Position numbers and translations under genes: made by a program | DNA from: Monocercomonoides exilis PA203 | Taxonomy: Eukaryota > Protista > Preaxostyla | Length of the DNA: 64,000 bases | Reading direction: 5' to 3' | NCBI GenBank assembly: GCA_001643675.2 | Contig: LSRY02000005.1 | Span: 372,001-436,000, forward strand | The notes under the pieces: model-generated | What the model was told of the DNA's origin: nothing | The model's database searches: none | Seen by the model: only the letters and a program-made list of their open reading frames with translations | Shown here: positions 7,869 through 33,500 of the stretch, in pieces | How positions within the stretch are numbered: the first letter of the stretch is position 1 | Layout: every line of letters starts with the position of its first letter

Positions 7869-9259
7869 GGGGAGAATAACGAAACGAAAATTTTGAAAAG
7901 AATTTGTTGAAGATTTGAATTATGCGAATCTTTTCATGATTGAATCAAAGAACTTATCGTTTCTTGTCACAAAATATAAAAAGAAAAAGAAAAAGAAAAC
8001 TTATTTCACCTCTGGCATGACATGTTTTATATTTGTTAAAAAACAGCGTTTATAAATGCATTTAGTTTCATTTTCTTTTTGGATCATTTTTTCTAGAATT
8101 TTTGTGTTTGAAATTTTAATTTTGATTCTCTCCATTGGGATGAAGTAACATTCAAATTGGATCGATTTTTAATTTTTTTGAATGAAAAATATGTTCAAAT
8201 CTGCGGATAAAAAGGTTTGCCTTTAACAGAATAATTACACCAAAAATTTATCAACATCCAAAAAGTTTTAAAACACGATCGAAAAAATTGAATTTATGAT
8301 TGAAAAATATCTAACCTTCGAAATTTTTAAAAATTAATAAAAATCAGATTCTCATCACTTGCATTTCTATATTGTTAAATAATCCGAGAAAGTGATAAAT
8401 TTGAACAAATAATATATATTTTTTCTTTTATTAGATGAAATTTGAATAAACTTCTTTAATTCAAATAAACCCATTTAATTCAAATGAAGTTTGTTTATTT
8501 TAAATGAAGTTGGAACATTTTAATTAAAGATTGCATATGCAAATTAACGCTGAAATCCATCATGTTAAAGCTTTGATAAATTATATTTCATCTTTCAAAA
8601 TTACTAATTGGCTCATTTGGTGTTGTTTCTTAAAGTCTATAGAATTCAATTTTTTCAACGGTTTTGATCTTTTTGATATTAATTGGAAATGAAACAAAAT
8701 CACAACAAAATGAGCTTCAAAGACAAAAAAAAAGAAAAATTTCGTGAGTTGAAAGTTTGTTTCGTTTATATTTTTATGTTTTTTTTTAAAAAACCAGAGA
8801 TGAACGATTTTTATTTGGATAAAAATGTTATGAGGAAAAGTGAAATGCTCTGAACAATTTCAATGTCTAATACACAAATAACTGCAAAAGTGTACGAAAT
8901 GAAGCGTGGAAGCTGACAAACTTAATTTTCTTTTTTCTTCTTCCTCTCCTTCCCCCTCTTCTCCACCCTAAACAATCTCCTCCCACATGCCCACTCCCCA
9001 ATCCCAACCTCCTTCTCCATCTCCCACTCCTCTTTCTCCTCCTTCATCTCCCTCATCCAGCCTTTCCTTTTTTCTCCTTCTTCTCTCTCTTCCTCGTCCT
9101 CTTCTCCATCCCCTTCCCTTTTCCCTTCTCTTTCATCTTTCTCATCCTCATCCTCATCATCTTCTTTTTCTTCCCCTTCCCCTTCCTCTTCCCCTTCGAT
9201 TTCCTCTTCCCCATCCCCTCTCCATATCCATCACCAATCCCATCCCCACCTCCAAATCC

Positions 9260-10335
9260 ACCTCAATCTCCATCTCTCAAACACCCTCTTCTCCAACATC
9301 TCCTCTCCCCAATCCCCTCGATCTCTTCCATCCCTTCCCTCCCACTCACTCAATCCATTCATCTCAACCACCTCTTCCTCTTCTCTCTCTTCCACCAACA
9401 TCAACATCAATTTAATCCCCTCCTTCTCTCTTCACTCATCCCTTTCCATCCACTCAACCATCTTCAAACACACCCACAACCCCATCGATGGTGCCATCCT
9501 CCCAAACCTCAACAGCCCTTCCACTTCTCTTTCTGCCTTCAATGCTTCTTTCCTCCACCAAACACGTTCTTCACCAAATGCTCCAGTGGTGCATGTTGGA
9601 AATGAATCTCAAAGAAAGAAACAAAGCAGAATGTCTGAATTTGATGAGAACAACCATCGCTTCGAATGGTGCGAATGGAATGATTCAAATGGTGGAAGCG
9701 ATTGGGGTGGAGCGCTCAAAGTCAATTGCACAAATGCAAATCTCACGATCACTTCTTGCTCGTATAGCAAATGCTCAACAACAAAACATGGTGGAGCGTT
9801 ATATTGCGATTATTTGTTAAAAGTTGATATCGCAAAATCCAATTTCACAAGCTGTTCAGCTGCTCATGCAGGAGCAGTCCATGCTACAAGTCCACGATCA
9901 AATTCTGTTTGGACATTCTCAGAAAACAGAGTGGAAAGTTGTTCAATAACAAACTATTGCGGAACTGGTTGGTACTTTTTCCTCTATTACATACCATCAG
10001 ATGCAAAATTCCTATTCAAAAGTTACGTCTGCATTGCAAATACTGGTGGAGATGCGGCTGGTGCAATCACGTTTCATTTCCCTCCACCAGTTATAACTCC
10101 TCAATATTTTCTCCAAGAGTTCCAGTTCATCAACAACAAAGTCGAAAATCCATTCACCTTCGGTGGTGCTGCCCTGTGTTGCACAAGAATATTTGATTGG
10201 ACGAACGTAATTAAATTCATCACATTTTGTTTCTTCAATTACAACAACGCTTCTATTTGCAGATGGAATGATGTGTTTTTCAATGGAAGCATAATCACAC
10301 AATCCCCATTTGATAATTGTATATCATCAATTTAA
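9260..10335 (+). pseudogene. Fragment of a Cys-rich GGA-repeat (beta-helix-like) surface-protein family gene
   Basis: IDGAILPNLNSPSTSLSAFNASF...FEWCEWN...GGAL aligns by eye with YDGGIVPSLNSPSSSLAASNTSF...FTWCVWN...GGAI at about 55190-55440. No clean start; truncated. Confidence 0.65.
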
Positions 10336-10470
10336 ACAAAAATAATTAGAAATATCGGAACTTCTGGATAAGAAATTATCAACGTTTGCTCCGTTTCGTC
10401 TCTTCTCCCTTTTTTCCTACAAATAAATTCCATATACCATTTTTCCACACTCTTTTCTTCCTTTTCTTCT

Positions 10471-11750
10471 TCACATTCTCTTCCTATTCCTACCGTTTAT
10501 CCTCTGCATTTTTAAATCTTTTTTTGATGATGATGAATTTGCGCATCCACTCCTCTCCTGGTTCTCATAAATCCATCTCATTATTTCCTCTTTTTGCTTT
10601 TGTCCTTTATATTCCTTAAAAATAAACTTCATGCCTCCATTAAATTTCTCTTCTTCTTCCTCCTCTTCTTCCTTCTCCAAATCAATCGAACTTCCCTCTC
10701 TTCCTTGCTTCTCATTCATCCCCAAATCATTCGTACACATTTCCACCTGTTCCACATCTTTTCTCACCCACTCTGAACTTCCATCTGAAGTTATTCCTGA
10801 AAACCCATCTGCTGCTTCTTCTTCTGCTCTCCTGTTCTCCTGTTGGATTCCATCGGATGGAGAAGAATCACACACTTCACTTTATGCTTATAACTGTTTG
10901 TCTGCCTCAGCCTCCGTTCCCGCCTTCACAAACCTCAGCCCACTCAGCCCAAGCGCCTCCACAACAAGCAGCGCTATCGCTTCTTCCAGTTTCCCCTGGT
11001 TCTCTTTGATTCTCTCCACAAACTCTCTGCGCGCTGTCGGATACCCACCTTTCTCCTCATTCCCATCACCTTCCTCTGCCTCTTCCCGCTCATCAAACAC
11101 TGCCTGCACAATCACTGCACGAGATTGAACAATATCTTCAATCCTCAGCCCCGCTGCCGACAGCCCCTTCTCCACAATCCCCCCCACTTCACACACTGCA
11201 ATCCCTCGCCCCATCACTTCGTCGTCCAGCTTCACCACCACACGCCTCGACTGCGGCGATCGCGACACCAGCCGCGCTATCGCCGACGGCAGCAGCGACG
11301 GGTCAAATAGATCGTTGATCGACTGGTACGCATTCACATCTGCCGCTGCAAAGATCCGCTTGCTCCCCGACTTCGTGCCCACCGACGCTGCAAGTGACGG
11401 AAGCTGCCCCACCAGCGGAACCGAAAGCATAGCCAAAAGTGCGACAATCCAGGCGCAAGCAACATTACCATTCAGCAACGCTCTCCGCGTAACAACATAT
11501 CCCCGCAACGTCTTCGGTGGATGGGGTGACAGCTGCATATGCCGCACATACACCCCAGCCGCCTCTCGATGCAGTCCATCGCTGCTGCCGACGTGTATGA
11601 CGCAGCCACCGCTGACGCATCCGAATGGTTAATCGCAGGCGCTGATGATGGCAGATCATCCCCTGCCGCCTTCTTCTCTTCACTTCTCCGATTCCGGAAT
11701 GGAAAAGTTGATCGGCGTGCTGCTCCATATCAGAATGAAGAAATATATTA
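10471..11750 (-). pseudogene. IQCH: IQCH-like (IQ domain-containing protein H) gene fragment with frameshifts and stops
   Basis: VPLVGQLPSLAASVGTKSGSKRIFAAADV...DLFD...RRVVVKLDDEVMGRGIAVCEV matches the conserved IQCH segment from memory (PILG..P....YSTKSGSKRVF...WLFKMD.EF.G.G.A). In-frame TAA at about 10888. Confidence 0.7.
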
Positions 11751-13710: not shown

Positions 13711-15013
13711 ATATAATTATACTGGGTCAGATCAATTTTGCCCACCTTTCTTAAATATTGCCAAATAAAAAAATAAAAAAAAAAAATAAAATAAAATAAA
13801 AAAAAAAATAAAATAAAAAAAAAAAAATAAAATAAAATAAAATAAAATAAAATAAAAAATAAAAAAGAACAGACTCAATAAGCAAAAATAAACAAAACTT
13901 GGGTCTAACAGTCTTCAAATTGATCTTTTTCCTTTTCTTTGATATGGGTGATTTTTTTTGACATCATAAAAAAAGATCAAAAATCGAAAAAATAAAATCT
14001 ATTGTGGTATTTATTGATCAAAGAATATAAATGATTTTTTGCAAGTATTTTGCTTTTATTTCTGTCATATATATTTGGAAAATTTATAAGAACAAAAAAA
14101 CATACCTTTTTTCATTAATAAGAATTTTTTGATCAAGTTAAATAAAAATGATACAAAAATATAATGACAAATATCATAACTTGTTGAAAAAAATAATATA
14201 TTTAAAATTAAATAGAGAGATATAAATATAGAAAATTAGTTTATTCTAAATTGTATGCAATGTGTTTTATATTTATGAAGCTGAAACTTCATCTCCAAAT
14301 TCCTGCTCCAGTTGTTCATTTCTTCGACTTTATTAAACGTTAGCAGAGATAGTGGATAATCTGATAAAGCTGAGTTCAACAGCTGGCTTTTCCTCATCGC
14401 TTTGAACAAAATGCTGACCATCAATGGAATTGATGCTGACGTCTATGGAAGAGAAGGACAGATCCCATGTGAAACCGTTGAATACACCTTTAATGGCTTC
14501 ATTTCCTTCCTCAGTTCAACATTTGTTCCCACTTAAACACTCACACTCAGCTCCGATGGTACAAAAATCACTTATAACAATGAATTTTTTCTGATTTCCT
14601 CATAGTTTCTTCCTTTTTCTAAATTTCTCATTTTCCATTTCATAGAAAAATTCATGAGTTTTCATCGACTTAACTAATTGGTGCATGTTCCATCACTTGC
14701 TTTTAAAAACCCTTGACATCCACTCAAAAACTTATATCTCTTTTATATTTCCTCTCCCATTTCATGTTCAGCGACTTTTTGAAGGCACACGATGTTGTGA
14801 AATCTCTCGAAAACTATCCCTGCAACTGTTTGTTCAAAGAAAAATTTCCCCGCCTCGTTCTTTCTGTTTCCTCAAATTCTTTCAATCTCAAAATGAAAAA
14901 GTCAGAATCGATTTTCTTGTTGATTTCGTGCCTTCTGATCAGCTTTTCTTGGTTTAATATAGTTCTCTCATTTTCATATAACTTCAGCTGGCATTCTATG
15001 TTAGAATAAATAA

Positions 15014-16858
15014 TTATCTGTGCTTCCGAAAAGAAATGAAAGATAAGAAACGATATCGAATTTGAGGGGAGTTGAATGAAAGAGAAGGAGATGAAGATAG
15101 AGCAGTAAGTGAGAGTAGAGAAAGAGAGTCAGGAGCTGCAGGACTAGCAGAAGATGAAAGTTTAGCGTGGTATTGCTGCGAGGGAGATAAAGAAGTTCTG
15201 ATGGAAGGAGAAGATTGTTGTTGGATGTTCATAAACATGAACGAATTGAAAAGTGAAGAAGTGCAGTTAGAGAGAGGATGAAGAGAAATATTTTCATTTG
15301 CGTCAAATTCTGCAGCTGAATCAAAAGACGAAACCAAATTTTGAGCAGAATATTTTTGCATCAGATCCATCGCCATTGAATTCTGCAAAGTGGAGAAAGA
15401 TACCAATTTTGAGAACGACAGCGCATCTCTTCTCCCAGGCACGTTGTTCTGACTGAATGTTCTTGTTCCTTTCTCTTGAAACAGCATAGGCGATCCTTTC
15501 CCTGCTCCTTTCCTTCCCTTCCTGTGTATCACTTCTGCTTCCTCTTTGTACGGACACCAGCTCCGCCACTTCATCACTCTTCCTCTTCTAAGCTCAGCCC
15601 TGATCTGCCTCAGCTCGCTCATTAGCGCACTCATCAGATTCAACCGCTTTCTTGTCTGCCTTGCATCGACTGCTGCATACGCAGGAACTTTCTCCATTTT
15701 CCTGCGCTCCCGCTCTTCTTTCTTCTTCCGCCTCCTCTCTTTCTCTTCTTTCTTCTCCTTTTTCTTCTTTTGAATTTCCTGCAGTTTCATCAGCCGAAGC
15801 AGTTTTTCTCTCTGATCATCAGATTCCAATGAATAAAACGTAGTTTTTGCCTCTTCATCGTCTACTTATCCTTTCTCGTTCTGAAATTTATCAAATATCG
15901 CCCTTGTCACTTCTTTGTTGAAATTCTTCGTTCCCATAACACCCAACGTAACCCCTTCTCCCCCTCCTCCTCCAACAGCAGGTGACAGCGGCGTTGTAGG
16001 TGCACCAACAGCCCCTCTCCCCATCTCCATCCTCCGTCCATTCGCTTCCCTCGCGTAAAGTGTATCGTTTCAAAGGCGCCTCTTCCTGAAGAATATTGTT
16101 TAGGCCGCGGAGAAGGTGATGGTGTTGTGTTCTGTTGCTGCTGTTTTTGTTGTGATTGCGATGAAAGAGGCTCTGGTTTTGGCTCATTATTATTCGTTTC
16201 GCCTTTTTTGTTGTTTTGAACAGATTCTTTTGCGTTTGTATTCTTATCTGATTCTGTTTGACAGTCTTTCTTTTGAAGCAGCTTCTTTGGGGTTGTTCAT
16301 TGAATCCTCTAAAACCACTTCTTTATCATCATCTTTCGTGCTATCTTCATATCCTTTCTCTTCTTCCTTATTTCCATTTGCATTCACAGAATTATTCCAA
16401 TCTTTCTCTTCTTTTCTGTCTTCTTTGCTATCTCCCTCACTTTTAGAAGCATCCACACTCATTCCTGGTCTTTTTAGAGACTCGTCAATCGGCGCTGGAG
16501 AAAGCAGCAAGTTTGGTCTGACCATCAAAAGCACCTCATTCACAACAGAATCACGTTGAAGCTCAAGCGCCTGGTAATACCTTCGCATCAACCTCTGTTT
16601 CTCTCTCTGTTTGTGCCTCTTCTCTCTTCGCTCTACTTCATCACTGATGATGAAGCTGTCGGAAAGGCATTCACTATCTTCATTTTTCTTCGGTTCCTTC
16701 AAAGAATCTTTTCTAATCAATGATAAACTCTCGTTTTCTTCTGCTTTGACATTATTTTCTTTTTCATCATCATTGTAATCTCTATCATTTTCAGGCTTCA
16801 ATACCTTCCTCATCTTAATCAGTTCTCTTATCCTTCTTTCTTCTCTTCTCTCATTCAT
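15014..16858 (-). pseudogene. Unidentified charged, low-complexity gene fragments (cargo)
   Basis: Broken minus-strand ORFs 16244-16858 and 15014-15829, K/E/R/S-rich, with no recognisable domain. Confidence 0.35.
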
Positions 16859-17151
16859 TCATTCTCTCTTTCGCTCTCTCTCTTTCTCTCTTCCTTTTCT
16901 CCAGATTCTTCGCTTACCGCTCCACCATCCGAAACTCTGCAAACAGCGGCAGCGCCTCAAACACATCTGGTGGGAGAATGAAATATTGTCTTTTCCTTCT
17001 TCATTTTAGCTGTTGCTTCATCCTTTTTATCTGCTGGTCTTCTTATGTCATGAATTTGTTTCAAAAAAATCGACGCGAAGAGGAAAAAGTAGAAGCTGAA
17101 GAAGAAGAAAAAGAAGAAGATGAAGAAGAAGAAGAAAGAGAAGAAGGAGAG

Positions 17152-17301
17152 GAAGAAGAAGAAGAAGAAGAAGAAGAAGAAGAAGAAGAAGAAGAAGAAG
17201 AAGAAGAAGAAGAAGAAGAAGAAGAAGAAGAATAAGAAGAAATGGAAGAAGAAAGAGAAGGAGAAGAAGAAGAAATAGAAGAAGAAGAAGAAGAAGAAGA
17301 A
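17152..17301 (+). repeat. (GAA)n microsatellite
   Basis: Long pure GAA run at about 17152-17231 with a degenerate continuation. Confidence 0.9.
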
Positions 17302-17362
17302 GTTGCAGCAATCGCTTTATCAGCCCCATTTCCCTCTCTTAAATCACTCCTATTCTTGTCTC

Positions 17363-19616
17363 TCATTCTGCTGTCTGCAATCGAATCGAGCCAAACGGAG
17401 CCATAGACGACACCTCCTGTTCGATCTCATACGTTCTTTTAAACAGCTTCTCATCCCTCTTTTCGTTTCTGTGTATTTCCGGAAACAGCTGGCCACACAA
17501 CTGCAATGACATTGTTTTGCATGTGTGAATCAACAGCGGCTTCTTGTAATGTGCCCGCGTATTCATCTTGCTGTTCACCAAACGTTGCAGCTGCTTTGCC
17601 ACCTGCTTGAAAAAGAGCACTGAGTCGCTTCGGACAGCAACCAACGACCGGTAAATGTGATGCTTTGCTAGGGACGTTGAATGGCTGATCAGTGCCATCG
17701 AACTCGTTGCCAGGTCAACAGGCAGCAGTAGCGTTGGAATCGATGAATGTATCTCCACCAGTGCCAAGGGCAGCTTCACGAGGGAGGAGGCAGTGACAGT
17801 GAAGGAATGGAGTGCGCTGTTGCTGATGGGGTTCACACCATTCAGTTTTCTGTACAACATGCTGGTGTGTGTGGTGTCGAAGAAGCTCATCTTTGCGTGG
17901 AAAAGCTTTGAGAACACTTCTGTCTTGATGGCATGGGCAGACTGCATCCGGAAGCGGGTGGTGATCAAATTCACAAGAATCTCGCCGAGCGACAAGAATA
18001 ATTTCATGATGATGTGGATAAAGAATAAGAAACTTGACGAAAGATTGAAACGGCTCAGAAAGGAGAACAGAAACATTTTCTTCTTCTGCTTCTTCTGCTT
18101 TTTGTGCTTGAAGGAGTTTTTCTGAAGTGAATTTTTTGATGTTCTTGTTTTTGAATTGTCACTATTTTTGTGATTGTTTTCTTGAGATGATGGTGGTGGT
18201 GATGACATAACTGAATCATTCAATGTTTTGTTCAAAATTCATTTTTCTTTTCTTCTCATCCTCCCCTCTCTTTTCTCCTCCAAGTCCATTGAGTATCCTG
18301 TTCATCTGCTCCATCTGTGCATCCTTCGCAGTCCACGTGTTGAGCACAGCGCTCTTCCCATTCTGAGCAACGTTACTCAGCACAATCGCCAGCAGCGCCA
18401 AGAACAGCAGGAAAAACGACGCATGCTTGAAATACCACAAAACAGAGGAGAGAGAGACAGAATCAGCCTCCATGTCGAAGGACTCCTTCAGATGCCCCAG
18501 TTCAGAGGGAGAAGGAGAAGGAGAAGGAGAGGAGGAAGAGGAAGAGGAAGAGAATGAGGATGAGGAAGAAGAGGATGGAGAAGGAGAAAGAGAAATCGGA
18601 GTTTGAATGATTGAAGAAGAAGAAGAAGAAGATAAATGTGAAGGTGAATGTGAAATGCGTGAAATGGGTGGAGAAAGTGAAGTGTTTGAGTGAGTCAAGT
18701 TGAATGGAGAAGAAGAAGAAGAAGATGATGATGATGGAGAAGGAATGTCATTTGCATCTTTAATCTTCTTCTCACAATTGTTTTCAAAATTATCTCCCAA
18801 TGTTTTTCTTTCTCTTTCACCTTCCTTCTTCTCTTCTTCCTCTCCTCCTCCTCCTTCCTTCTCCTCCTTCACCATCACCCCCATCTCCTTCACAATCCCC
18901 TTAAACTCCTCTGCCCTGCCTATCTTTCTGATCCTCCCGTCCTCTTCCATCGCGATGGCCGTGTCAAAATAAGGCAGATATTTCGTGTGATGTGTCGCTA
19001 ACAAGACGGTCTTCCCTTTCAGCAGCTGGCTGATGCATTTGATGACCAGCGCTTGTCCCACATGAGCATCGACACTCGCCAAAATGTCATCCAACAGAAA
19101 CACCTCAGCCGATGAATAGACTGCCCTCGCCAGAGCTATCCTCACACACTGCCCGCCCGACAGGTTGTATCCTCTTTTGCCCACTTCTGCTTCGTCTCCG
19201 CCAGGAAGAATGTCCAAGTTTTGTTCCAGACAACATGCTTGAATGACACGAGCGTAGCGGACGGGGTCAAAGGGAGTGTGGAAGAGGATGTGGATTTGAT
19301 AATGTCGTTGAAGATGAAGGGAATCTGAGTTGAAAATGATAGATGAATGGGCATACGATGAATAATATAAGAATGAGGGAAAAAATCGGTTCAGAAAAAG
19401 AAATGGTGGATAAAATGTTTATCAGTTATAAAGAAATTTAAAAAAAATAACAAAAAAAATCATCTATTTTCATTTTTATTCATCTTTACTTACACACCTG
19501 AGGACATAAGCCACCTTTCCCCTCAAACAACCTTTCCCTTCCAAACAGATTGTCTCTCCCAGAATGGACGCTAGCAGCGCTGACTTGCCACAGTCAACAG
19601 GGCCGAAGAGGATTGT
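17363..19616 (-). pseudogene. ABCC/MRP-type ABC transporter fragment (NBD1 plus start of TMD2), cargo
   Basis: Degenerate Walker A LFGPVDCGKS; VAYV; intron 19325-19497; LPGGDEAEVGKRGYNLSGGQCVRIALARAVY; Walker B FLLDDILASVDAHVG; later AKMSFFDTT. Frameshifted and truncated at both ends. Confidence 0.85.
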
Positions 19617-19664
19617 GTGGGAATGTCTTGGGAGGGAGAGGAGGAAGGAGGTGTAATAGATGAA

Positions 19665-20080
19665 GAAAAAGACAAAATATGCTTATTTTCGAATAAATTG
19701 AGAAAAATTTATATTCTGTTGCTTCTAACGAGAAGCAGTGAAGTAGAAACCAGCATTATTTATATCAAATGGAAGAGAAGTGAATTGGGCGTATCTTTTG
19801 AAGTATATAACAGAAGAAGTAGTAAATTACGATATGAATTATATATTATGCAGTTTCCTCAATAAACGAAGGTTTTCAAAAGATAATCAAATTTTATTTT
19901 TCTTGTTATAAACCCATTTCAAATTTCGTATTTTTTGTTGATCTGCAATTTGCAGAAATGATAATTTTTTGATTGTAAATGGTACAAATGATATAAAGAA
20001 GAGATCCATATATGCAAAAACGATTTCTGCAAATTGCCAAATAATTACAATCTTTTATTGATCGAAAAGATCAACTTGAG
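19665..20080. repeat. Left internal inverted arm of the giant element
   Basis: CCCATTTCAAATTTC...TTGATCTGCAATTTGCAGAAATG (19913-19960) is the reverse complement of about 25498-25546. Degenerate similarity extends outward to about 19665/25805. Confidence 0.75.
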
Positions 20081-20663
20081 CAATTTTCAGAAAGAATATT
20101 TTATGAAACATTAATTAAATAAAAAATTTTTAATTTTAAATTTTCAATCGATGAAATAAATTTTATTTGTTTTTTATTTGTCAACATTGAAAAAAGAACT
20201 TTTTGGAAAAAAATTTTTCAATAATTTTAAATATAACTGTTCAAAATATTTCCATTTATTCTTTTGCTGTGAAATTTTTTATTAACAAATGAATAATGAA
20301 TTTTAACAATATTTTAGTTGTGATAGAGATGCTAATTTCTTGTTATTGAATATTTTTAATCATTTTTTTAAAAGAATTATTTTTTTATTGTTTAATGTTG
20401 ATGTTTTTTCCTGATGATGTGGAAAAGGAGATAAAAATCATGTTAGTTTTGAACTTTCGGAAATTTTCAGAAGGATAATTTTGAATAATATTAATTCATT
20501 TTTGGAAGCTCTTTGTATTTTTTTATTTGCCAATTTTTCTTGGAATGAACACAAATCTTAAAAAAAATTTAGAAAAATTAATAAAAAAGTATTATAAATT
20601 CAAACAACAGCATATGAATCTCTAATATCATCAAACCATAATTAGAAAATTTTTTCAATAAAA

Positions 20664-23022
20664 ATGTCTTTTTCAAAACCTCAATCAACTCTTAATTCTC
20701 GATGCAAAGTTTTATGGAACGAAATAAAACGAATTGGTGGAGATGACGTTGATTCATTGCTTGTCTATCTCTTTTGCAACTATAGGCAATCATCTTCAGT
20801 AATTAATGATTTACTGAAGTCTTTGAATGGTTTGGCTTTAATTTTATGGATTGAGTGAAACATGTCATTTCAACTCTCTGTTAATTTTTCTTTCTTTATT
20901 ATTTGTTTATTATTTATTAATTTAAAACAGAATATCACATAAAGCTACTGGAAGACCTGTCTGTGGTGTACAATAACGCTCCATTGCACACTCAGACAAC
21001 ATTGCTGCAGGCGTTGTCTCGAAACACATTATTATCCGATTTTCAAAACTATGGATATGATGTGACAGAAGGAAAATTTATTTACGCGAAGCAAACGCTC
21101 AAAAAGAACCAAGGATTAATCATTCAGCCTCAAAAACCTCATCTTCCGTCTTGCAAAAGTGGTTTGTTTTTATTTGATTTTTTTTGAATAATTTTCTCTG
21201 TATTTTAAGGCTTAAATGAACAGGACTGGGAAAAGGGCAACAACTGGATGTTAGCCCATTCAACTGAAGCCTCAACTTCGCTTCAGTCAGCAAAGAAAAA
21301 GCAGCGAGCTGAGCCTGACTGTGCGAGATTTATTGACGAAGCAGCGTGGGATGAAGAAATCATCACAGAAAATTCATCTCAAAGAAAAAAACAATCTTCT
21401 TTTCCTTCAATATCATCTCTGCAAAACAAAAAATCAAATGTCGTTACAGAAAAAAATTCTTCTTCAACAAATTCTTCTCCATCTCAAGCTGTTGATGCTC
21501 CAATCAGTGCTCCAATTAGGAGAGAAAGGGGTTCAACAAAAAGAAAAACAAATAAATCACAACATAGACGTTGTTCGTCTCCTTCACCAATTCCAATTCA
21601 CAAATTATTCAAAGCAAAACTTTCGAAATCTTCATCATCCTCCTCATCATCCTCATCCTCTTCATCTTTCAAAAAGAAACAAAAAGAAAATAAAAATTCT
21701 TTTTCTATTGAAGAATCTTCAACTGCCTTTTTCAACGATGATGTGTGGGTGAGTGATCAATTAATTGAATATGCCACTTCACCGACTCTAATTCCACCAC
21801 AAGCATTTCAAAATCTTCTTTCATCATTTTCAAAAGAGAACAACACTTATTCGTCTCAACATAACACACCTGCCGATGAGAATGTTATTTCGCATCATGA
21901 AAATACTGCACAGATCACGATGAATAACAATCAAACAGATTTTCCTCATTCAAATTCTTCTCCTTTTTCATCTACCTCTTCAAAAATTATATCATCAGAT
22001 TCTTCTTCATCAACATCAATAAAAGGATTAATAAATTTAGGAAACACATGCTATCTTTCATCTCTTCTTCAATGCTTCTCTTCGATAACCTCACAAAAAC
22101 CATTCTTATTTAAAAAGCAAACAGCAATAAAAACAATGTCTTCTCGTGTTTTAAGTGTTTGTCAGCAACTTGCCAAAGATGGTTCATCAGTGCGTTCGTG
22201 GGCTCCATCACTGATCAACAAATGGGAAACATTTTGCGGATACAGCAGCAGGCAGCAACAGAATGTGACAGAAGCATTTGAAAATCTTCATCAACTTCTT
22301 CAAGATAATAAGATATTTGAAAAGGATACCTTCAATCCAGTGCTCATTACTCATTTCAAATGTCAAAAATGTCAAAAAGTCTCTAATCATTTTAATGAAT
22401 CTTGTTGCAGTGTTATCATCAATACATCATCACCTCACAAAGGTTTATCTTCACTTTTTGCAACAGAAATTTTGGATGGAAAAAACAATGTTTATTGTAA
22501 TGAATGCAAAGAGAAATGCTGTGCTGCTAGATGGGAGGAAATGGTTGCATTTCCAGAGGTTCTAGCCATCTGTCACGAATGCACTGAAACTGCTTGCTCT
22601 GCACCTTCAAAAACCTTCGTCATGGAAACCGATAGAGTGAATCAGCGTTCGTTTTGCAAAGGGTTTTCAAATGATAATTTTCAACATCTCCTGGAGAACA
22701 ATAAAGAAGTGTATTTTTATCATTTTGTTGGGCAAATTCTTCATAAACAGTTGGATCAAAGAAATGGCCATTATATCGCTGTCATCAAAAGAAATAGAGG
22801 AAACGATGTCTCATGGAATATTTGCAACGATGCTGATGTGACAGAGCTGAACATCGAAAATAGGACAAAGGCATGGAAGGATCTTTACGAACAAGGTTAC
22901 ACTCCATCACTCTCATTCTATACCAAAGAAAAAACAAAACCAACGTTTTCAACAATTCAATTTGGTGGTTCCTCTTTTTCTTTATCTTCTGAACCATCAA
23001 GCATTAACACTTCAAACATCAT

Positions 23023-23097
<75 letters not shown>

Positions 23098-24463
23098 GTT
23101 CATCACACCACCTCATCGACCAACTTCCATTCCTCCACTCTCTTCATCAATAACATCAAGCTACGGATTGGAAGCATTAAAGGAAAGAAGAAAGAAAACG
23201 GGCATCTTTTCTCCGAATGAAAAGAGATTAATCTTCAAGCCCAAAACCAAATTGTTGAAAGAGTTTTCAGAAGAAACGAATATCAAAGTATCTCTTTCCC
23301 ATTTCAACAAGCTGACAACCAACTTCTCGAAAGCAAAAAGACGAACCGACCTTTGTGGAATGTACGAGAAGTTGGACTATTTGGAAAATAAATTGAAATC
23401 TTCTCAAAACAAAAATGGACTTTCTCCTACAGAGTTTCATACACTCAAACTTCTTCGACAACATCGACTTGTTGCAGAAATGCAACGAAAACATTATCAA
23501 TCAACTGTTGATAATTTGAAAGAGGGAGAAGCAGTCTTCGTCTTCGACTTTAAAGAAAAATGGAAACTCCCTATCAGAAAAGATCAACTTCAACAAGAAT
23601 TCTTCAACTATCAACAGGTTTCTCAGTTCACAATCATCTCTCTTCATAGAATTAATAATCAAAAAATAAAACGAACATTCAACTTCTTCTCCGACTGCCT
23701 TTCAAATGATCACAGATTTGTTATTGAGTGTCTGGAATCTGTGATCAAAAGACACTTCTTCTCAGACACTCACACTTTTTAGTTCTTCTGCGATTCAGGT
23801 CCACACAACCGAAATCGCTTCCTTCTTCACTTCATCCTCTCCAAACAATCAAAACTTCTCAAAAAGAAAAACATTCAACTCAACGTCTTCGCTGAGCATC
23901 ATGGAAAAAATATCTGTGATAGTGAATTTGGTGCGTTAGTGAATGCAATCGACAACAATCTTTCGACAGAACACATCACCACACTTCATGACTTGATCAA
24001 CTTCTTCGAAAACAATATGAACACTTCGACATCAGCTTCTTCAACTTCACAATTGAACAACATTTCAACATCATCATCAAACTCTTCATCATCTTCAACA
24101 TCTGTCAATGACTCTGTGCATGAGAGGAACTTTGAAGAATATGCACCATCTCAACAAATCTAGTGGCCATCATTGTCTGTTCCACACATGAAGGACTACT
24201 TGTATTTTGAGCGCAAGGGCTCATTTGTCTGTGCTTCGGCTGTTGGATATCTTCCTCAACGCTCTCTGGTTGCCCTCGAATCTTCGACAATGAAAGAAAA
24301 AGTTCAACGAACAAGAAAGTCATTTCACTCTGGTAATGCATCATCAAACTCTTCTCTTCTTTCTCAATCTTCTCAAAATCTTCTTTCAAGGAGATTTGAG
24401 CTTCTTCTTGACTCTTCTTCTATTAATGAATCTCAAAGTTGTTCTTTTGGTGTCCCCTATTAA
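20664..24463 (+). pseudogene. Sola2-like DDD transposase with an in-frame USP (peptidase C19) domain; decayed
   Basis: Introns 20830-20930 and 21162-21209 splice in frame. USP: GLINLGNTCYLSSLLQC, QQNVTEAF, CQKC/CNEC, GHYIAVIK, WNICNDA. Transposase: TDLCGMYE, FVFDFKE (D at 23546), FSDCLSNDH, FCDSGPHNRN (D at 23792), FAEHHGKNICDSEFG (D at 23918). In-frame TAG at 23780 and 24161. Confidence 0.8.
23024..23097 (+). repeat. (TCA)n microsatellite encoding the poly-Ser linker after the USP domain
   Basis: Pure TCA run within the ORF. Confidence 0.9.
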
Positions 24464-24467
24464 GAAA

Positions 24468-24605
24468 CTAGTTGTTGTGCATGCTTAGCCGGTACTCTAT
24501 CGGAAGGGTGCTGGACATGACTGTTCGTATTTGATATTGCAGCCTTCGGGCTGCTTTATCCGGACCTGGATACGACGAACAGCCTCCCCGGTGCACAATA
24601 GTTAG
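24468..24605 (+). ncRNA. Putative structured RNA element just after the transposase stop codon
   Basis: 14-bp closing helix 24468-24481/24592-24605 with three G-U pairs. Inner helices CCGG/CCGG and CTGTTCGT/ACGAACAG. Apical GCAGCC-TTCG-GGCTGC. GC-rich island in AT-rich DNA. Confidence 0.45.
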
Positions 24606-25379
24606 AATCCGATTGTTTTCTTGTGGTTTTTGTCCCCATAATGTTCCTATTTTCACTTGGTAATAGTCCCGAATTTTTATGTATATATCGAGATTCATTA
24701 ATAAAGAGAGTTGTGAGGGAATTCATTGATCTTTGGGTGAGATTTTTGGAAGGGAGAGTTGTTGAGAGTGTGAAGTGATGTTTTGTCATTGTGTCTGTCT
24801 TTTTTCTTTGTTGGATTTGTTCTTTTTGAGTTTGGACAAGAGAAATATCAGAAAGTGTAGAGTGGATGGAAAACAGAGGGAAAATAGACTCGTTTGTTTT
24901 TGAACTTTTTATACAAGTATTCTTTTTTGTTTGGAATTGTCTTTGATACCACAAATTTGCTGAAATAGTATAGATTTTTTATTTATCTTTTATTGTTCAA
25001 AATTGTTGACGTTTTGTTGATATTTGGTGATTGTTTTATGATTATGTGATAGAATTATGTTTTTTGGAAAGTTGATGAATCTGATAAGAAAATTTCTGAT
25101 TGTTTTCAATTTTTTTTATGATTAATATCATGAAGAACTTTTTGTTTTTTTATGTCATATTGATTGGTGTTCGACTGTTATTTTTTAACGTATTTTTTTC
25201 ATTCCATTGATCTTTTTTCCATTTCGAAAAAAAACTCAAATTCGAATATACAAGCATTTTTCTCCTTGAAATCATTTTTATTTCTTCCACATTGCAATGT
25301 CATATAAAGAAAACCAACAAACTCAAAAAAATTCATCATGAATTTTTCTCAACAGATCAACAAAAAAATTTTTTTGCTT

Positions 25380-25805
25380 TAAAAAAGATCTCAATGATCA
25401 TGAAAACTTTTTATAACGTGGAAATTTGCAGAAATCGTTATTAACCTCATTAAATACTTCATCAACATATAAATATTATCTTGATATATCAAAAAAGCAT
25501 TTCTGCAAATTGCAGATCAATAAAAATATTGAAATTTGAAATGGGATTATAATGAAGAAAAAGGTTTGAAATTTCGTGTTGATACTTTTTTTTCGAAATT
25601 TTTTGCAACTTATGAAAGACTCTATTTAATATTTCGAATGCTTTTTCTCTTTTCCTATTCGAAATTCTTTCACTATTATCCAACTGAATCCTGAGTAGAA
25701 TTTTGCTGTTTCCCGTTTCCAATGGAGTGAAAGCAAATTTTTCTATGTTTGTCCTTCAAGGTATTTTATTTATTTTTATTTTGAAATTTTATTTTCAAGT
25801 CTTTT
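25380..25805. repeat. Right internal inverted arm of the giant element
   Basis: Mirror of 19665-20080. Contains AATTTGCAGAAAT at 25423 and ATTTCTGCAAATT at 25499. Confidence 0.75.
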
Positions 25806-25899
25806 ATCTTCTTCTGTTTCTGTTTCATTAAATGCTGGATTTCCATCTTCCTCTTTCCCCATTTCAGGAATTCAAACAAAGAATTCTTCATTCTCTTCT

Positions 25900-28800
25900 T
25901 TATTTGTTTCACTGCTGAGTGTTTCAACAACCGCACTTGGAAGAACACTCAAAAGAAGCAACAGATGAAAAGCGCTTGCTGCCTTCAAGCGGATAGTTCG
26001 TATGAAGACATACACGGGCTCAAGAATTGCTTCACCAGAGTTCAAATCAGAAGTGCTGGGGCTGACAAACAAGAAGGGAGGAAGTGGAAATAACATCAAC
26101 AATAACAATAATAATAGTAATAGGAAGAAGAAGCTATTACGTGTTGTGATGGAACAAGTGCCGCTGGCTATACCAAGAGGAAGACCACCGAAGATGTGGA
26201 GGAAGAAGATGATGACGGCGATGGGGCTGAGTCAGCAGGGGAAGAAGAGCGAAGGAGGAGTAAGTGCAAATGTGACTGCACAGAATGCGAGGCGTTTGAA
26301 GTCAACTGTTGTAACATTGGAGAGTTAGAGGAAGCTTGGAAACAAAGAGAAAGTGAAAGAAGAGGAGAAAAAAAGGAGAAAGGAGAAAGGAAAAAGATAA
26401 GAAAAGAATTATTTCTGTGTTTAAAGAGCTTTTATCAGATGAATTGGAGTTTTGCAGGCAAAAAGGTGAAAAGCGGAGAGGATAAGCGAGCGTGAAAGGG
26501 AAAGGAAAAGCGAAAGGAAAAGCATTCAGATCAAAGACAAGTCCGACGTTGAATTTATATGATGTGCTGAGTGAGCTGCTTTCGAGAGAGCTGGAGCTGC
26601 TACGTGTGGCAGATGGCTGCATCACATTTAACTCTTCTGAGTCTGACACGAGTGGGACAAGTGGAAGAAGTGAATGAAACACCGATAAAAATGAATATGA
26701 CGAGGAAGTGGATGATGATGAGGAGGAGGAGGAGAAAGAAGAGAATGATAAGGATAAAGAAGAGGGGAAAGAAGAAGATTTGAAGTTATACAGGATTCTC
26801 AGTGCAAAAATATCTTTGACAAGCATACAAGCCAACCGCTAGATACAGAAAAAGTACAGATCTGTTTTTGAATATGACACAACAGTCACATTCAACTCTG
26901 CAAAAATGAGAGAAAACAGCTCAGTCGAAACAACATTCAAAGCAGCTGAGATGAAAGAGAGACAGAAGAAGGAGGCAGTCACGATGCTGAAGGAGAACAC
27001 ACTGAAACTGACACATGGAAGGATCATTCCGACAATCAAGCCAGCTGACCTTCTGCTACCGACTAATCTTGTTCAGGAAGAGGAAAGAAGGGAAAAGACA
27101 CCAAAAAGAAAGATGTGGCCGAGAGGGAAATGGAAGAATGTGTATTATTTGAAGCGGAATGAAGAGAGGAGAGAGAGAATGAACGGAGCAGGTGCAGCAG
27201 ACTCAGAAGAAGCAGAAGAAGATAGCGAGAATGACGATAGCGATGATAGTTACGTTAGCGATGATGAAGATTATTTCGATATATCACGATCTGCTGACGC
27301 ATTAAATGCCAATAAAGCAGACAAGGCAGCGGAAAGAAAAGAAGACTCATACACACTCCATGCCTTGCGCTTCACTCCAAAGCAGCGAAAGACGCTTTCA
27401 TCTGAATCCAAAAAGAGAAATCAGAAGAAGTCGCATGTCACTTTCTCACACACCTCAACCATCTCCAGCGGAGAGCTCAGTCCAACCCATCTGCCTCTGT
27501 CCCTCCTTTAGCCAAGCCCGCAAAGGAAAATGGAGAGAAAGAAGAAGGTGAGAATGCAATTGGCTCAGAAGGCAGCAGAGAAGCCCGGCAGAACCCGCAC
27601 AGAAGTCACAGCAATTACAGTTTGTTGGCTGTTTCTGTGTCACGAAGGCATCTTGTCCTGTCTGCCATCAGAGCAGCACTAAACAGATCAACGCAGACAT
27701 GCCTCAGAACAGCTGCGGCGAACGTGTTTGCGAAGGCTTCTTCATGAGAGAGTTTGTCAAGCCAGACAGACATGCCAATGCAAATGGAGAAGATGGAGGA
27801 GGAGGAGGAGTGGATGACTATGGAAATCCTTCTGTGTTTGGGAGAAAATACAGACAGAAGACAGGGCTGGAGACGCTGTTTGTGCGGTCGATGCAGCAGA
27901 TAGGGCAGAAAGAAGGCACTTCTTTGCTTCACTCTCTCGGAAAGGAGCTATTCCATCTTTTCAACCAGCTTTGGCCACCTCAGCTTCCAAAGCAAACAAC
28001 CATTCCTTCTTCGCATGCCGGGACAACAGGGGGAATATTGGCAAATGATGCGAACTCGTTTCTGAGCCTGTTGCGTGGAACGAGGCTGTTCAGCTTGGGA
28101 GGAGAAGATACCGTGAGTGATATGCAACTGGTGGAGAACATGAGAAAGTAGATGAGTTTGTGGAGAGGAGAAGGAAGGGCACTGTGGAAGGAAGGGACGC
28201 TGCAAATGGCACGGCGGAGTTGTTTTGCGAAGAGAGGTGAATCTACAGCAACGAGTTTGAAGTGCATAAAAAGATCAATAGAGATAATGGTAATGGCATC
28301 TCTTCAGATTCAATTGACAATGAAACATTTGCAGTCAACACGATTATTTGCAGACCCGCTTCTGTTTGCTTCGTCTGTCTTTATCAAAGACAAGTAAATA
28401 TTACCGTCTGCCTCAGAAAATATAATTTTAGTTCCTCCTCAATGAACGGCATATGTCCCATCCATCGGAGAAACTCAGCTCGAACTGACAAATCCATCTT
28501 TTCAGGTTGTTCCGCTGCGCACTGAACATCCACAGAAAGGAAAGAAGCATTCGATTCTGTCTTCTCTAAAGTTTTCATGAGTGCTTCTTGTCAATGCGTG
28601 CCCTCTCATGCTTTCTTATCCTCTAACTTCAATTATCCGTACTCTGCCTTCTAAGCTGCTTTCAGCATCTTTCACTTCATCTTCAGTATTCTACATCCCT
28701 TCTCTATTCATATTTTTATGTCGCTTCTTTTTCAATTTCTCAGTCCATATTATCCTTCAGCACAACACCTGCCATCATCTCAATTTCCACGCAGCCACTC

Positions 28801-29190
28801 ACCCTTTTGCCGCGTAGTCCAATCGCCTACTGCTTCGTCTGCCGGTATCACTAACTGCACTCACAGTTGTTATCACCGTTGCTCACAGCCTGATGGTGAA
28901 GAAGGTCCTGTTCCACTTAATATCAGCCATATTCGAGACACACCATGACCAGAAACCTTCTTCTTCTCCTTCGATGTTCATTTCTGCCTCTCTCATTCAG
29001 CGGTTGAAGGCTGTTGGTGCTTCATTCACACAACAAGCCACACCTTCCGCTTTTGCTTCCGTTCAGCAAACATCTGAACATCAGTCGACTTCATTGGTAT
29101 CGAAGGTTGCAACAAACGCACAGGATATGAATGGATCTTCAAACGCTGCTACTGTGGGAGCTAATACAACTTCTGTTGGTAGTGAGTGAA
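25900..29190 (+). pseudogene. Unidentified frameshifted gene fragments (cargo)
   Basis: Chain of broken plus-strand ORFs (26002-28397, 28893-29189) with coding-like composition and Cys motifs (CKCDCTEC, CPVC). No family recognised. Confidence 0.35.
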
Positions 29191-32146
29191 TGCGTAAGGA
29201 ACAGCAAGTGGAAGAAGAGGAGAACTTTCCTATCAGATAAAGATAGGCTAATTCTCAGTTATTCTTCCACATCAGCTGATGACAAGCATCACCTCCTCTC
29301 AGTCACTTTTCTCTTCTCTTTCGCAATCTCCTTCTCCTTCTCCCTCTTCTCCTTCATTCACATAAAAAAATTCTCCATCCTCAGTTTCCCTCCCTTTTCC
29401 TTCGACTCATTCTCTTTCACTTCAGCGTTATCAACGAACATCTCCTTCTCTTTCTTTTCTCCCAGCCATCTGGAACAATTCTTGAGAATTCGACGATGCG
29501 AAGTCAACTTTCTCGAATTCTTTCTCATTTGTTAAAGGATGCTCTTTCATCTTCACCTGCAACTATCCTCCTTGTTCTGCTTTTGTCACAGCTACAATCT
29601 AATTCATAATCTTCTTCTTCTTCCTTCTTCTTCTTCTTCTTCTTCTTCTTCTTCTTCTTCTTCCTTTTTCTCTTCCACTACTACCACTTCTTCTTTTTCT
29701 TCTTCTTCCGATCGTATTTCTTCATTTTTGCATCTTCATAAGTGATAATAACCGAAATAAAAAAGAATGGAATTTATGATGAAAAGAAACGGGTTGAAGA
29801 TGAGAAGATGATTGTTTTGTGAACGAAGAGAATGAAGATAAAAAGAAAGATAAATTTATTAAAGACTGAATATTACGAATGGAAATCGGATTAAAATAAT
29901 TGAAGAGATTAAAAAAGAAAAAAGTATAATATGGAAGAGGAGAGAAGTTGGAAGAGAAGACTTCAACGAGAAGAAAAAGAACGCTAAAACGGAGAAATAA
30001 TCAATTGTTATTTATCTGAATCATTCCGTCTGCTGCTTCTTTTTCATAGGTGTCTTAAAGCACAGCAACAAACTTCAGGGAAGGGATTTAAAAGGTGATG
30101 CTTCGAAGAGCTTATCCGTGGTTGGGAAGCTACTTGGAAGTGCCAGGGAGTGCGCAGTGGACGGGCTGATCTGTTGCAGGTGAACAAGCAGCGGTCGACA
30201 TGCACACAGTTGTTCGCCTCTGAGCTGGTCGAAAAAAATGGTGGTGAAGAAAGAGTTCATCATGCTGAAGAAGCTTATTGACTTTTTTAAAACAAAAAGA
30301 TGAAAATGACACGCTGAATCATTCAGTTGCCACATTCGTGGTCATGAGATGATCGAGGGAGCAGCTGGAACCATCGTCGAACAGGAGCACATGCGAGGCT
30401 GCACTTAGGGTGAAGAGGTTGGCGTGGCATAGAAAGAGAGAGGAAGCAGGAAGATGAAAAACAGGGCAGGTGAGGTGGAGGGAATGGACAGATATGTTGG
30501 AAAGGCGAAGGTTGCCTTGGCAAGAACAAATGAGAGGAAAGCTGAGGTCGATATGATGTTCGGGGAAGAATAAGAGGGAGGAGGACACAGCAAGCGATCA
30601 GTCGAGGAGGTCGAAGACTTAGGTGCAGGCGAATATAAAAGAGGAATGGAAGGAGAAGTGGTGGCTGGAGTACATGCAGGTATTGAAAAAAACGACAACA
30701 ACAACGAGAAAATGGTTGTGATGCGAACATGAACAAGACTTAACGAGACAGATACGATTCGGATGAAGGAAAGGCAACCCTGGTGGAAGATGTGGAGATA
30801 GGCTATGGAGAGGAAGGCACAGGGCGCAAGCAAGGAGCAGCGCTGGAGGGCAGAGGAGCAAGTGTCCTGGATAACGAATATATGGAAAGCGCGGTAGAAG
30901 GTGATGAAGAGGAGGAAGAAGATATCCACATCGAGGTCAAGGCCGGACTATGAGGAGTCGGAGCTACAGATGGAGGTGTTTGTAGCAAGAGAAGGATAGG
31001 TGAAGTCGAGAAAAAAGAGGGACTCATTGTTTTGGGCATGAATGCTGGAACAACGAAGAAAGATATCCATGTTCACTAAACAGTTCAAACAATAGCCTTC
31101 AAAATAGCGCCAGAGACGAAACAACAGATTCACATTGCTTTGTTCAATTTTCGGGAGAATAAGAAAAAAAAATGCATTGACAGAGGTGGAACATACAATG
31201 TTACCGGTTTGATGCTCAGCTACGGAGGATAATACTCTGGCTGACTCAACATTTGCGTCAGGAGCAAGAAATACTGAAAGAGAAAGTTAAGAAGCGCTCT
31301 TCTGAAAAGTAGTGGATGCGCTTCAAGCTGGCTAACTTCTTTCTCGACTAAAAAGCAGAAGGATCTCTGTCAGGAAATTCAACTGAGTTGGCAAAGATAA
31401 AGGAAGGAGAAGAAACAGAGAAGAACAGATAACACAGAGAATGTGAGATCTTTGGAGTCGTTGAAGCAATAGAATGCGATGCCAAAAAGAAAAAGATGAA
31501 AAATGAGAATATTTGAGGAAGAGGAGGAAGAAGAAATGAGGATGGTTGAGGGGCGGAAGCGTTTTAAGAAATAAATTCTTAACTTCGCAAAATTTTTCTT
31601 TTAAAATTTTCAGTTTTGTTTTTTTTTCAAACTTTGATCAATTAATAAAAAAAGTAATTTTAAGAATTAATGTTTTTTAACAATAATTAACAACAAAGTG
31701 TTGTTTATTAGATAAATATCTAGCTTTCTATCATATTTTTGTCTCTTTGCTTTTAAAATTGTTTGTTTTCGACAAACGTTTTTGGATCTTCAACAGCAAT
31801 TTTTGAATTTCTTTCCATTAACATTATAAAACTAATTTCATTCTAAAAAGTAATTAATAGTATATTGTTTTAATTGTTTTCATGTTTTCAAACATGTGAA
31901 CTTTTGCGTTTTTATGTTTATAAAATTTTCGAAATATTTTGAATAGTTTTTTATTATGTTTTTTTCAAAATTTGTAATAAAAACAATTTAAATAAATTAA
32001 AAATCAACAAATTAATTATTATAATAATATATTAATGCATATTTTCGCAAAATTTTTCAGAAATATTTTCTTATTAACCAAACCCTTAATGAAAAAATAT
32101 TTTGATCAACCATCGTAATTTTTTATGATATCAAAAAAAATCACCC

Positions 32147-33500
32147 ATATGAAGCATTTTCTTCTTTGATATTATCCATGTCATCATGCAAAATTCTTCG
32201 AAAAACTCTTTTCTTCTTTGACTTCAATAGAAGATTATCTTCAACGTTTTCTGTTTCTTCTTCGGCTTCTGAACATTTCGCACTTGATCAAAAAATTATA
32301 TCTTCTTCCCACTTTTCTGAGAAATCTACGTTTGTAAGCAATTTTCCGCGAAAATAATAACGATTTGAAAAAGATGACAACTGCAATGTAGAGAATTTGT
32401 GTAATTTTCAGAAACTGGTCCTGATGATTTATGCAAAACACCACTAGCATCGAAGGTATTCTTTATCACTGACGGTGCGAATGCATAGCGAAGAGCTTGA
32501 GGAAGGATGTCTGCAAAAGCCTTTCAGTTGGAAGTTGGAGTTGAAGGTTGTGAGATTTTTTTTTGATGAATTATGAACTGATTTTAGAACAGCAAACACA
32601 TCTCTATCGAGAGGTTACGAAATATGTGTTGTGTGAAAAATAAATGGAATGACATCCACATTTGATTCCAAAATTTATCTCCAAATAACAGAGTTTGTAC
32701 CAGAGCTGTGCAAATCCACGAATAGCAAACATCTCTCTTCCGTTTATTCCATTCTTTTCTTTCTTTCTTTTATTTCTGGAAGCAGAACACTCAAAGAGCA
32801 TCGTTCGAATAGAGAAAATGTTATCCAACCGTTAGTATTGCTCCACACATCAAGCGAAGGAGATTGCAAAGGAGTCAACTATTCTGGAATATTGGAACTC
32901 GGACAAAGAACAATTGCAAGCAAAGAAAAGCCATCCGAGGCAACAGCAGCCACAAGTGTCGCGTTTCTCACTCTCAAAGGAGCAAGGCAATAGGCTGAAG
33001 GAGACTCCGAGGATGTCGCAACTTGTTTTTAGCAATTATCAGATAATCTTAATGATGTTTAATCTGCATCAAAGATCAGCTCCCTTCGGTATTTGTGCGT
33101 TGAATGCAAATCATTAAGCATTTCATTCCTAGGTTTCAACACGTCCTATCAAGATGCCGTAAGAAGTTTTGCATCCAAAATCTTTGGCTTTTGTTATTTC
33201 AATTCGAGTTGAATTTTCAAGAAGGAATAAGCAACAGATTTTGAAATTTTCTTTTTTTGGTGAAGCATCTTCAATAATATCTGATTCTTCATCTTCAATC
33301 GCATTTTCAATCTAAATAGAATCAAATAAATAGAAAATAGAAATATTTAGAAAACCAATTCTTTTGTTTTTCGTCGTCGGGTTTGTTCCACACTTTGCTT
33401 CGATTTTTATAACGTCTGAAACAATTTCGTTTTTTTCCTTGCGCAGTGATGATGTCCTTCCCACTTTAATAACATCTCTGTCATTTTGAACAGCTTTCAC
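32147..33500 (-). pseudogene. Degenerate pogo/DDE_1 transposase (its C-terminus continues at 13941-13875)
   Basis: Minus-strand NATLVAAVASDGFSL, LDVWSNTNGW, CLLFVDLHSS and HTTHIS*PLDRDVFAVLK parallel the copy at 57600-58070. Many stops. Confidence 0.85.

Follow-up and report, generated by a model that had tools for sequence, protein, structure and literature searches.

Cut-and-paste DNA transposons are usually a few kilobases long. The Sola2 elements of dictyostelids, described from Dictyostelium fasciculatum (DFa-1, DFa-2 and DFa-3) and Polysphondylium pallidum (PPa-1, PPa-4 and PPa-5) by Bao and Jurka in 2013, are 10–15 kb in size, end in terminal inverted repeats (TIRs) of 12–22 bp, and are flanked by 4-bp target-site duplications of the forms AWWT, ATAT, AAAT or ATTT (PMC3627910). 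Here we report the analysis of a 64,000-nucleotide stretch of the genome of the mitochondrion-less protist Monocercomonoides exilis PA203 (the window; GenBank assembly GCA_001643675.2, contig LSRY02000005.1, positions 372,001 to 436,000 of the forward strand), which contains a much larger element of this kind. The window corresponds to C47:372001–436000, where labels of this form denote contigs of the 82.3-Mb, 101-contig M. exilis assembly, and positions given without a contig label are those of the window. We conclude with high confidence that 13946–32146 holds a giant cut-and-paste DNA transposon of the Sola2 superfamily, inserted in full, whose transposase gene embeds a USP deubiquitinase domain.

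The M. exilis element resembles the dictyostelid Sola2 elements in encoding a homologous transposase with an Asp-Asp-Asp (DDD) triad and the shared motifs RTD.C..C, DFKE, W/F.D.G.HF and HGK..CD, in its short TIRs (28 bp), and in its 4-bp AT-rich A..T duplications, which include ATAT. Both are large for cut-and-paste transposons and are modular chimeras, with a common transposase part and a variable remainder. Homology, a DDD triad on an RNase-H fold and 4-bp AT-rich duplications together place the M. exilis element in Sola2. An earlier note on the same DNA gave 5′-GRG as the terminus of Sola2 elements. The 5′ ends of the D. fasciculatum elements start with GAA or GAG (PMC3627910), and the M. 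exilis termini with GGG. By contrast with the dictyostelid elements, the M. exilis elements are bigger (17–35 kb) and far more abundant (about 200), their passengers are dead host-gene fragments instead of a Fanzor/TnpB-like gene, and their transposase embeds a USP domain and lies in a cassette that is invertible between internal inverted arms.

The left TIR of the window copy (13946–13973, + strand) begins GGGTGAT and equals the reverse complement of the right TIR (32119–32146, − strand) at 27 of 28 bases, and ATAT stands on either side, at 13942–13945 and 32147–32150. These ends had been pointed out in an earlier note on the same DNA, and a scan of the window bore them out: with up to 3 mismatches allowed, the TIR pattern occurs twice, both times at an element end, against a chance expectation of 0 and none in shuffled sequences. 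The left subterminal region (13946–14165, +) is kept in most of the copies compared and has more than 270 candidate matches, and the right one (31520–32118, +) is kept across copies. A search of the element for subterminal repeats that could act as additional transposase-binding sites gave nothing convincing.

Comparison with paralogous copies is decisive for the boundaries. A sibling element at C35:642424–660809 (C35a) is 95–97% identical across the entire 18.2 kb. The similarity ends no more than 2 bp from either terminus, and ATGT stands on both sides. Together with the window copy and C35a, ten more full elements on other contigs were compared (17.0–30.4 kb), giving twelve copies on ten contigs. 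Their flanks are unrelated, similarity stops at the TIRs, and a perfect 4-bp duplication is present in all twelve (ATAT in ten, ACAT in one and ACTT in one), in agreement with the earlier proposal that the outer ends mark one insertion site. Genome-wide, the 28-mer is found at 225 exact termini, or at 407 when up to 2 mismatches are allowed; a reversed control pattern is found at none.

The insertion point is the 3′ end of an old pogo-type transposase remnant on the minus strand, a decayed copy that was the target of the giant insertion. Its proximal part extends from 32151 to about 34000, with DDE_1-like motifs and several stops, and its distal (C-terminal) end lies at 13885–13945, the final 4 bases of which are the left ATAT. 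Deletion of 13946–32150 yields exactly the minus-strand peptide that the earlier note had quoted as an empty-site reading frame. The joined peptide aligns without gaps over 36 amino acids (aa), with 13 identities, to the C-terminus of a second pogo copy (about 58.47–58.59 kb, +), and the alignment is anchored on each side of the junction, by KR.FR.I..DD upstream and GKR..R..D.SFV.F downstream. The test is nonetheless weaker than the earlier note stated, because deletion of the element plus 1, 4 or 7 bases restores the frame almost equally well (scores of 130, 132 and 135); the other offsets tried score 86–93, and the best DNA alignment of the empty site contains two compensating 3-bp indels. 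The restored frame is thus consistent with a 4-bp duplication without proving one, and the paralogous copies fix the boundaries far more firmly. The second pogo copy, also DDE_1-like (about 56500–58600, +), is itself near intact, with one in-frame stop.

The published M. exilis assembly was built on nanopore reads (PMC8767320), which leaves some room for a segmental duplication or an assembly artefact in place of an insertion. We regard this reading as practically negligible, in view of the twelve copies in unrelated flanks that end at their TIRs with perfect duplications, the 407 termini against 0 for the control, and the interrupted pogo frame that is restored upon removal of the element.

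The flanks of the 225 exact termini define the target as A-N-N-T, with ATAT preferred: about 99% are A-N-N-T, with A at −4 in 222 and T at −1 in 224, while ATAT accounts for 114 (51%) and A[C/G]NT, such as ACAT, AGAT, ACTT and AGTT, for 22. A TA-specific target of the Tc1/mariner/pogo kind is excluded, the central dinucleotide being other than TA at about half of the termini, and a DDE_1- or DDE_3-type Pfam domain, as expected for membership of that group, was sought in the transposase and not found. The earlier note had kept a TA duplication with a terminal T as a caveat. The TA-specific part of it falls, while a related form survives, in which the element proper reads T-GGGTGAT...ATCACCC-A from end to end and only the central 2 bp of the A-NN-T target are duplicated. 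The near-invariance of T at −1 and A at −4 suits this form, as does the distribution of the exceptions, 3 at −4 and 1 at −1, for which a strict 4-bp duplication predicts equality. However, these exceptions are very few and their counts leave out partner ends with inexact TIRs, the 4-bp repeat is perfect in all twelve elements, and the reference Sola2 families are described with 4-bp AWWT, ATAT, AAAT or ATTT duplications (PMC3627910). We therefore consider the 2-bp form unlikely and describe the duplication as 4 bp throughout.

Pairing of facing termini, among a listed subset, gave three size classes, with about 13 pairs at 4.4–7 kb, three at 12–13 kb and about 15 at 17–35 kb, the last being the range of full-length members. 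No 4.4–7 kb pair among these termini coincides with a transposase match, and these short pairs are therefore probably deletion derivatives. Roughly 200 elements are present genome-wide, making up 2–3 Mb of the 82-Mb genome by a rough estimate. In all twelve elements compared, the USP-containing transposase lies within GGGTGAT ends, which supplies the link between ends and enzyme that the earlier note had proposed to look for in other copies.

The transposase gene (20664–24463, +) comprises three exons (20664–20829, 20931 to about 21161, and about 21210–24463), as modelled by comparison with the annotated protein MONOS_11334, which has two short upstream exons. The intact family protein, also encoded in three exons, has about 1200–1300 aa and consists, in order, of an N-terminal region, a USP/C19 domain (about 22025–22864, +), a zinc-binding CxxC...H motif and an RNase-H-like DDD core with the catalytic residues at 23546, 23792 and 23918 (+). 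A genomic search with the C-terminal 214 residues of the open reading frame (ORF) 21248–23782 found more than 100 copies at over 87% aa identity, of which about 50 sit in open frames of at least 1000 aa. Measured from the first Met of exon 3, one intact ORF of 1066–1173 aa is present in each of the eleven other elements compared.

Assignment of the enzyme came from sequence and structural comparison. A word-indexed homologue search, swamped by low-complexity words, returned two M. exilis proteins only, and all close relatives of the protein carry an M. exilis annotation. An exhaustive phmmer search of 1.8 billion representative proteins with the C-terminal 524 residues returned 688 hits, among them PPL_04538 of Heterostelium album (3e-15), which is near-identical to the published Sola2_PPa-1 transposase (PMC3627910, additional file 3). 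In BLASTP, the transposase and PPL_04538 share 28% identity over 250 aa (E = 3e-23), a region that covers all three catalytic motifs. An alignment of 51 homologues shows C156, C159, H192, D220, D302, H338-G339-K340 and D344 to be invariant. An AlphaFold model built on the homologue alignment has a predicted local distance difference test (pLDDT) score of about 90 or more in the core (means of 10-residue blocks mostly 83–97), and its strand and helix order is that of an RNase-H fold, with the first catalytic Asp on strand 1, the second just past strand 4 and the third on the helix that comes next. Foldseek comparison with solved structures returned distant RNase-H-like transposases only (such as IstA, Hermes and Mos1) and no close structure. 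The Sola triad, following Bao et al. 2009, is reportedly DDD. The earlier suggestion of a Sola2-like enzyme is thus confirmed at the level of homology and conserved motifs, the protein being a Sola2-type DDD transposase in a reference comparison made with Sola2 alone.

The only Pfam match in the transposase is USP/UCH (PF00443, 7e-16), and Cys-box, His-box and Asp motifs are legible in the translation. None of the 48 non-family homologues scanned contains a USP domain, and a full-text literature search did not find a USP-transposase fusion described. Among eleven intact copies, the ratio of nonsynonymous to synonymous substitution (dN/dS) comes to 0.04 in the DDD core and 0.19 in the USP domain, which shows that purifying selection acts on both within the family. 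Proteases are found in other transposons, such as Ulp1 in MULEs and Zisupton. VTD and OTU deubiquitinase domains occur in Helitrons and Helentrons (PMC9741609). In common with these, the M. exilis transposon protein contains a papain-fold ubiquitin or ubiquitin-like protease under selection, but here it is of the USP/C19 class and forms part of a DDD cut-and-paste transposase. The 30.4-kb element on C45 contains a second, 984-aa open frame (positions 8207–11158 of that element, minus strand), which ends in a USP-like domain and lacks the transposase part.

In the window copy, two in-frame stops interrupt the transposase, at 23780–23782 and 24161–24163. The first of these lies one codon past ...THTF and four codons ahead of the second catalytic Asp. 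Because there are only these two stops and the remainder stays in frame, this copy is recently disabled. The transposase of its sibling C35a (C35:650262–653471) is open, with GPY in place of the near-invariant GPH directly past the second catalytic Asp.

The transposase lies in a cassette of about 19.7–25.6 kb, which is the part shared by all twelve elements (the subterminal ends, which measure about 0.2 kb at the left and 0.6 kb at the right, are unmatched in one or two). The cassette is bracketed by internal inverted arms, at 19897–20058 on the left and 25400–25561 on the right. In the window copy these are about 165 bp long and about 80% identical, and each contains a pair of 15-mers 78 bp apart, which is kept in all six members of its subfamily. 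A second subfamily (the elements C47b, C65, C12, C11, C35b and C45) carries different cargo modules, and several of its members have longer and more similar arms: 1213 bp at 99.75% in C11, 1260 bp at 99.4% in C35b, 597 bp at 98.8% in C12 and 327 bp at 85% in C47b. The near-perfect arms inside C11, C35b and C12 stand against a difference of 12–25% between copies. In C11 and C12 the cassette lies the opposite way round to both cargo arms, with breakpoints inside the inverted arms, and its orientation is opposite in C11:761813–781627 and C35:245770–268196. These features fit a segment that can invert and in which recombination homogenises the arms, and the C11 and C35b arms in particular suggest concerted evolution together with flip-flop inversion inside the transposon.

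A cassette found either way round with respect to the outer ends, between inverted arms that reach 1.26 kb at 99.4–99.75% identity, could also be taken as a separate transposon with long TIRs. The locus would then be a composite, in which a USP-transposase element was inserted later into a non-autonomous cargo element with GGGTGAT ends, a possibility that the earlier note had named as the way in which its interpretation could fail. When the outer edges of the arms were compared between copies, however, their positions differed from copy to copy, and no common terminal motif and no flanking duplication were found. A nested element is unlikely because the arms lack conserved ends or duplications, and the spread in arm length, from 165 to 1260 bp, is expected of repeats that grow and shrink by conversion. 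Moreover, all twelve cassettes examined lie inside GGGTGAT ends, and in four elements of the window copy's own subfamily (C1, C7, C48 and C21) collinearity with the window copy extends across the cassette on both sides, implying a single ancestral arrangement and arguing against repeated insertion. The composite is thus improbable, and we treat ends, cassette and cargo as parts of one Sola2 element.

The cargo of the window copy totals about 11.5 kb and is modular. On the left arm, 14509–17140 (−) is a decayed piece of a giant host gene that occurs in nine of the twelve elements. It is followed by a small second gene fragment (17256–17611, −) and by an internal fragment of an ABC transporter gene (17363–19418, −; Pfam ABC_tran and ABC_membrane), the two being fused in a chimeric ORF. 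Beyond the cassette lie a downstream module (25561–29680, +), with 81–85% identity to at least 25 copies, and on the right arm a decayed fragment (30322–31286, −) of a member of a host gene family encoding proteins of about 2700 aa. The scrambled gene fragments reported in the earlier note are confirmed for four modules by genome matches, which point to fragments of large host genes. An intact version of left-arm sequence matches a stretch of a 5757-aa open frame (C25:1666707–1667963) at 84% aa identity; the counterpart in the window copy (16232–16900) contains stops, and about 100 other left-arm matches are stop-ridden transposon copies. The ABC piece runs from the end of a nucleotide-binding domain through a Ser-rich linker into the beginning of a transmembrane domain, and its nearest long host frames, on C64 and C15 (over 1000 aa), are 67–69% identical. 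In the chimeric ORF 17363–18235, residues 1–214 are the ABC transmembrane piece and residues 205–290 match different loci, one of which is a 2623-aa open frame at C9:672740. The downstream block matches a 3548-aa open frame at C38:171–175 kb (in part at C38:174280–174966) with 81% nucleotide and 69% aa identity. The right-arm cargo has an intact 531-aa version in the element on C48, which is 86–88% identical to four frames on C29 (three of about 2700 aa and one of 1405 aa).

The host family of about 2700-aa frames, of which a C29 member donated the right-arm cargo, has more than 4000 candidate matches, and may form part of the sequence that the genome paper classed as ‘unclassified repeats’ overlapping expanded gene families. 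Triplet arrays of GAA and TCT at 17077–17302 and 29610–29708 form a long, imperfect inverted pair within the cargo, which outweighed all else in an automatic search for inverted repeats, and are taken as a low-complexity coincidence.

Cargo of this size could consist of functional accessory genes, as in Starships or in the Fanzor passengers of dictyostelid Sola2 elements. The modules are conserved at 81–85% over many copies, and protein-guided dN/dS values of 0.35–0.7 appeared to show mild constraint. This apparent constraint was rejected, a six-frame control giving the same range in every frame. In the six-frame scan of the window copy against C48, dN/dS is 0.16 for the transposase (1.4–1.7 in the wrong frames), but 0.47–1.10 across all frames of the cargo blocks, with no frame-specific signal, and cargo divergence is similar to the synonymous divergence of the transposase. 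Stops break the frames in most copies, Pfam analysis of 20 cargo ORFs found partial ABC domains only, and the ABC piece is internal and incapable of forming a transporter. A role as accessory genes is therefore very improbable. A Fanzor/TnpB-like gene did not turn up among the ORFs scanned, no exhaustive search having been made. Because it shows no frame-specific constraint and diverges like synonymous sites of the transposase, the cargo is best described as old, passively carried and neutrally decaying.

The capture of the cargo is also ancient relative to the window copy. The block at 25.2–29.7 kb is present in at least 25 other copies at 81–85% identity, always adjoining the transposase, the block at 17.3–20.7 kb is present in several copies, and the 20.6-kb element on C48 is collinear with the window copy over nearly its full length at 83–85%. 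As the modules are common to many copies at 81–85%, they were captured before the subfamilies split, and not by the window copy.

Capture of gene fragments is characteristic of Pack-MULEs, Pack-CACTA elements and Helitrons, the Pack elements being short and non-autonomous. The M. exilis elements are like Pack-type elements in that unrelated host gene fragments are joined between their ends, at times in one chimeric ORF, and are amplified with the element. In contrast to them, the cargo is carried inside transposase-encoding elements, is old and subfamily-wide, and comes largely from giant genes (2700–5757 aa). The earlier description of a giant, cargo-loaded family is upheld by the 407 termini, the 17–35 kb full members and the 11.5 kb of host fragments, while the label ‘Pack-type’ holds for the representation of several host loci but not for coding capacity, the transposase being encoded, and intact in eleven of the twelve elements compared. 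Giant cargo-carrying elements of tens of kilobases are otherwise known as Starships, Mavericks/Polintons and Teratorn. In these too, tens of kilobases travel as a unit. The M. exilis elements differ from them in that one DDD transposase and 28-bp ends account for their mobility and in carrying non-functional cargo, without tyrosine recombinase, polymerase, integrase or viral genes among the ORFs scanned; the hallmarks of Mavericks/Polintons (integrase and polymerase) and of Starships (tyrosine-recombinase captain) were absent by Pfam from these ORFs, which did not include every small ORF.

A mechanism may be proposed from these features. The transposase would bind the 28-bp ends, excise the whole 17–35 kb unit and reinsert it with a 4-bp staggered cut. 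Ancestral elements would have captured the host fragments as DNA, for instance through template switching in the course of gap repair or through recombination between elements, and the fragments would have hitch-hiked since. The cassette would flip through recombination between its own arms. The window copy would now be mobile only with transposase supplied by intact relatives.

Several points weigh against the interpretation as a complete Sola2 insertion, or limit how far it can be taken. The specificity of the transposase for the TIRs, the excision and the 4-bp stagger are conjectural steps of the proposed mechanism. The 4-bp duplication is a matter of convention, as the same sequence would be produced by a 2-bp duplication with a terminal T/A. 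The contiguity of the junctions is read from the assembled sequence, and the host origin of the cargo from the lengths of the open frames around the matches. The replacement of a near-invariant His by Tyr in C35a cautions that activity of the ‘intact’ copies is presumed from their open frames.

A bolder reading is of an active system, in which the USP domain is needed to move 17–35 kb units, the flip-flop of the cassette possibly switches expression, and repeated capture of giant genes explains part of the 35% of the assembly in ‘unclassified repeats’ and the reported overlap with large gene families. The arms being near-identical (99.4–99.75%) while the copies diverge by about 15%, cassette orientation could act as such a switch. 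We put this reading forward tentatively, as possible but rather doubtful.

The family extends what a cut-and-paste system is seen to carry, with one enzyme and 28-bp ends moving 17–35 kb at roughly 200 copies. In the M. exilis genome paper, 35% of the assembly was assigned to ‘unclassified repeats’, and it was suspected that these were being confused with expanded gene families (PMC8767320). A transposon filled with fragments of giant genes offers a concrete explanation, and a route to cleaner annotation of repeats and genes. The selected USP domain inside the transposase allows a tractable test of the role of ubiquitin removal in transposition, and a tool for the transfer of large gene cargoes might be sought among the intact relatives.

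Elsewhere in the window, a 5.17-kb element of a related family lies at 51570–56740. Its termini begin GGGTCAT, its ends are identical over at least 90 bp, and ATAT stands on either side. It is probably a relative that is non-autonomous and depends on a related Sola2 transposase.

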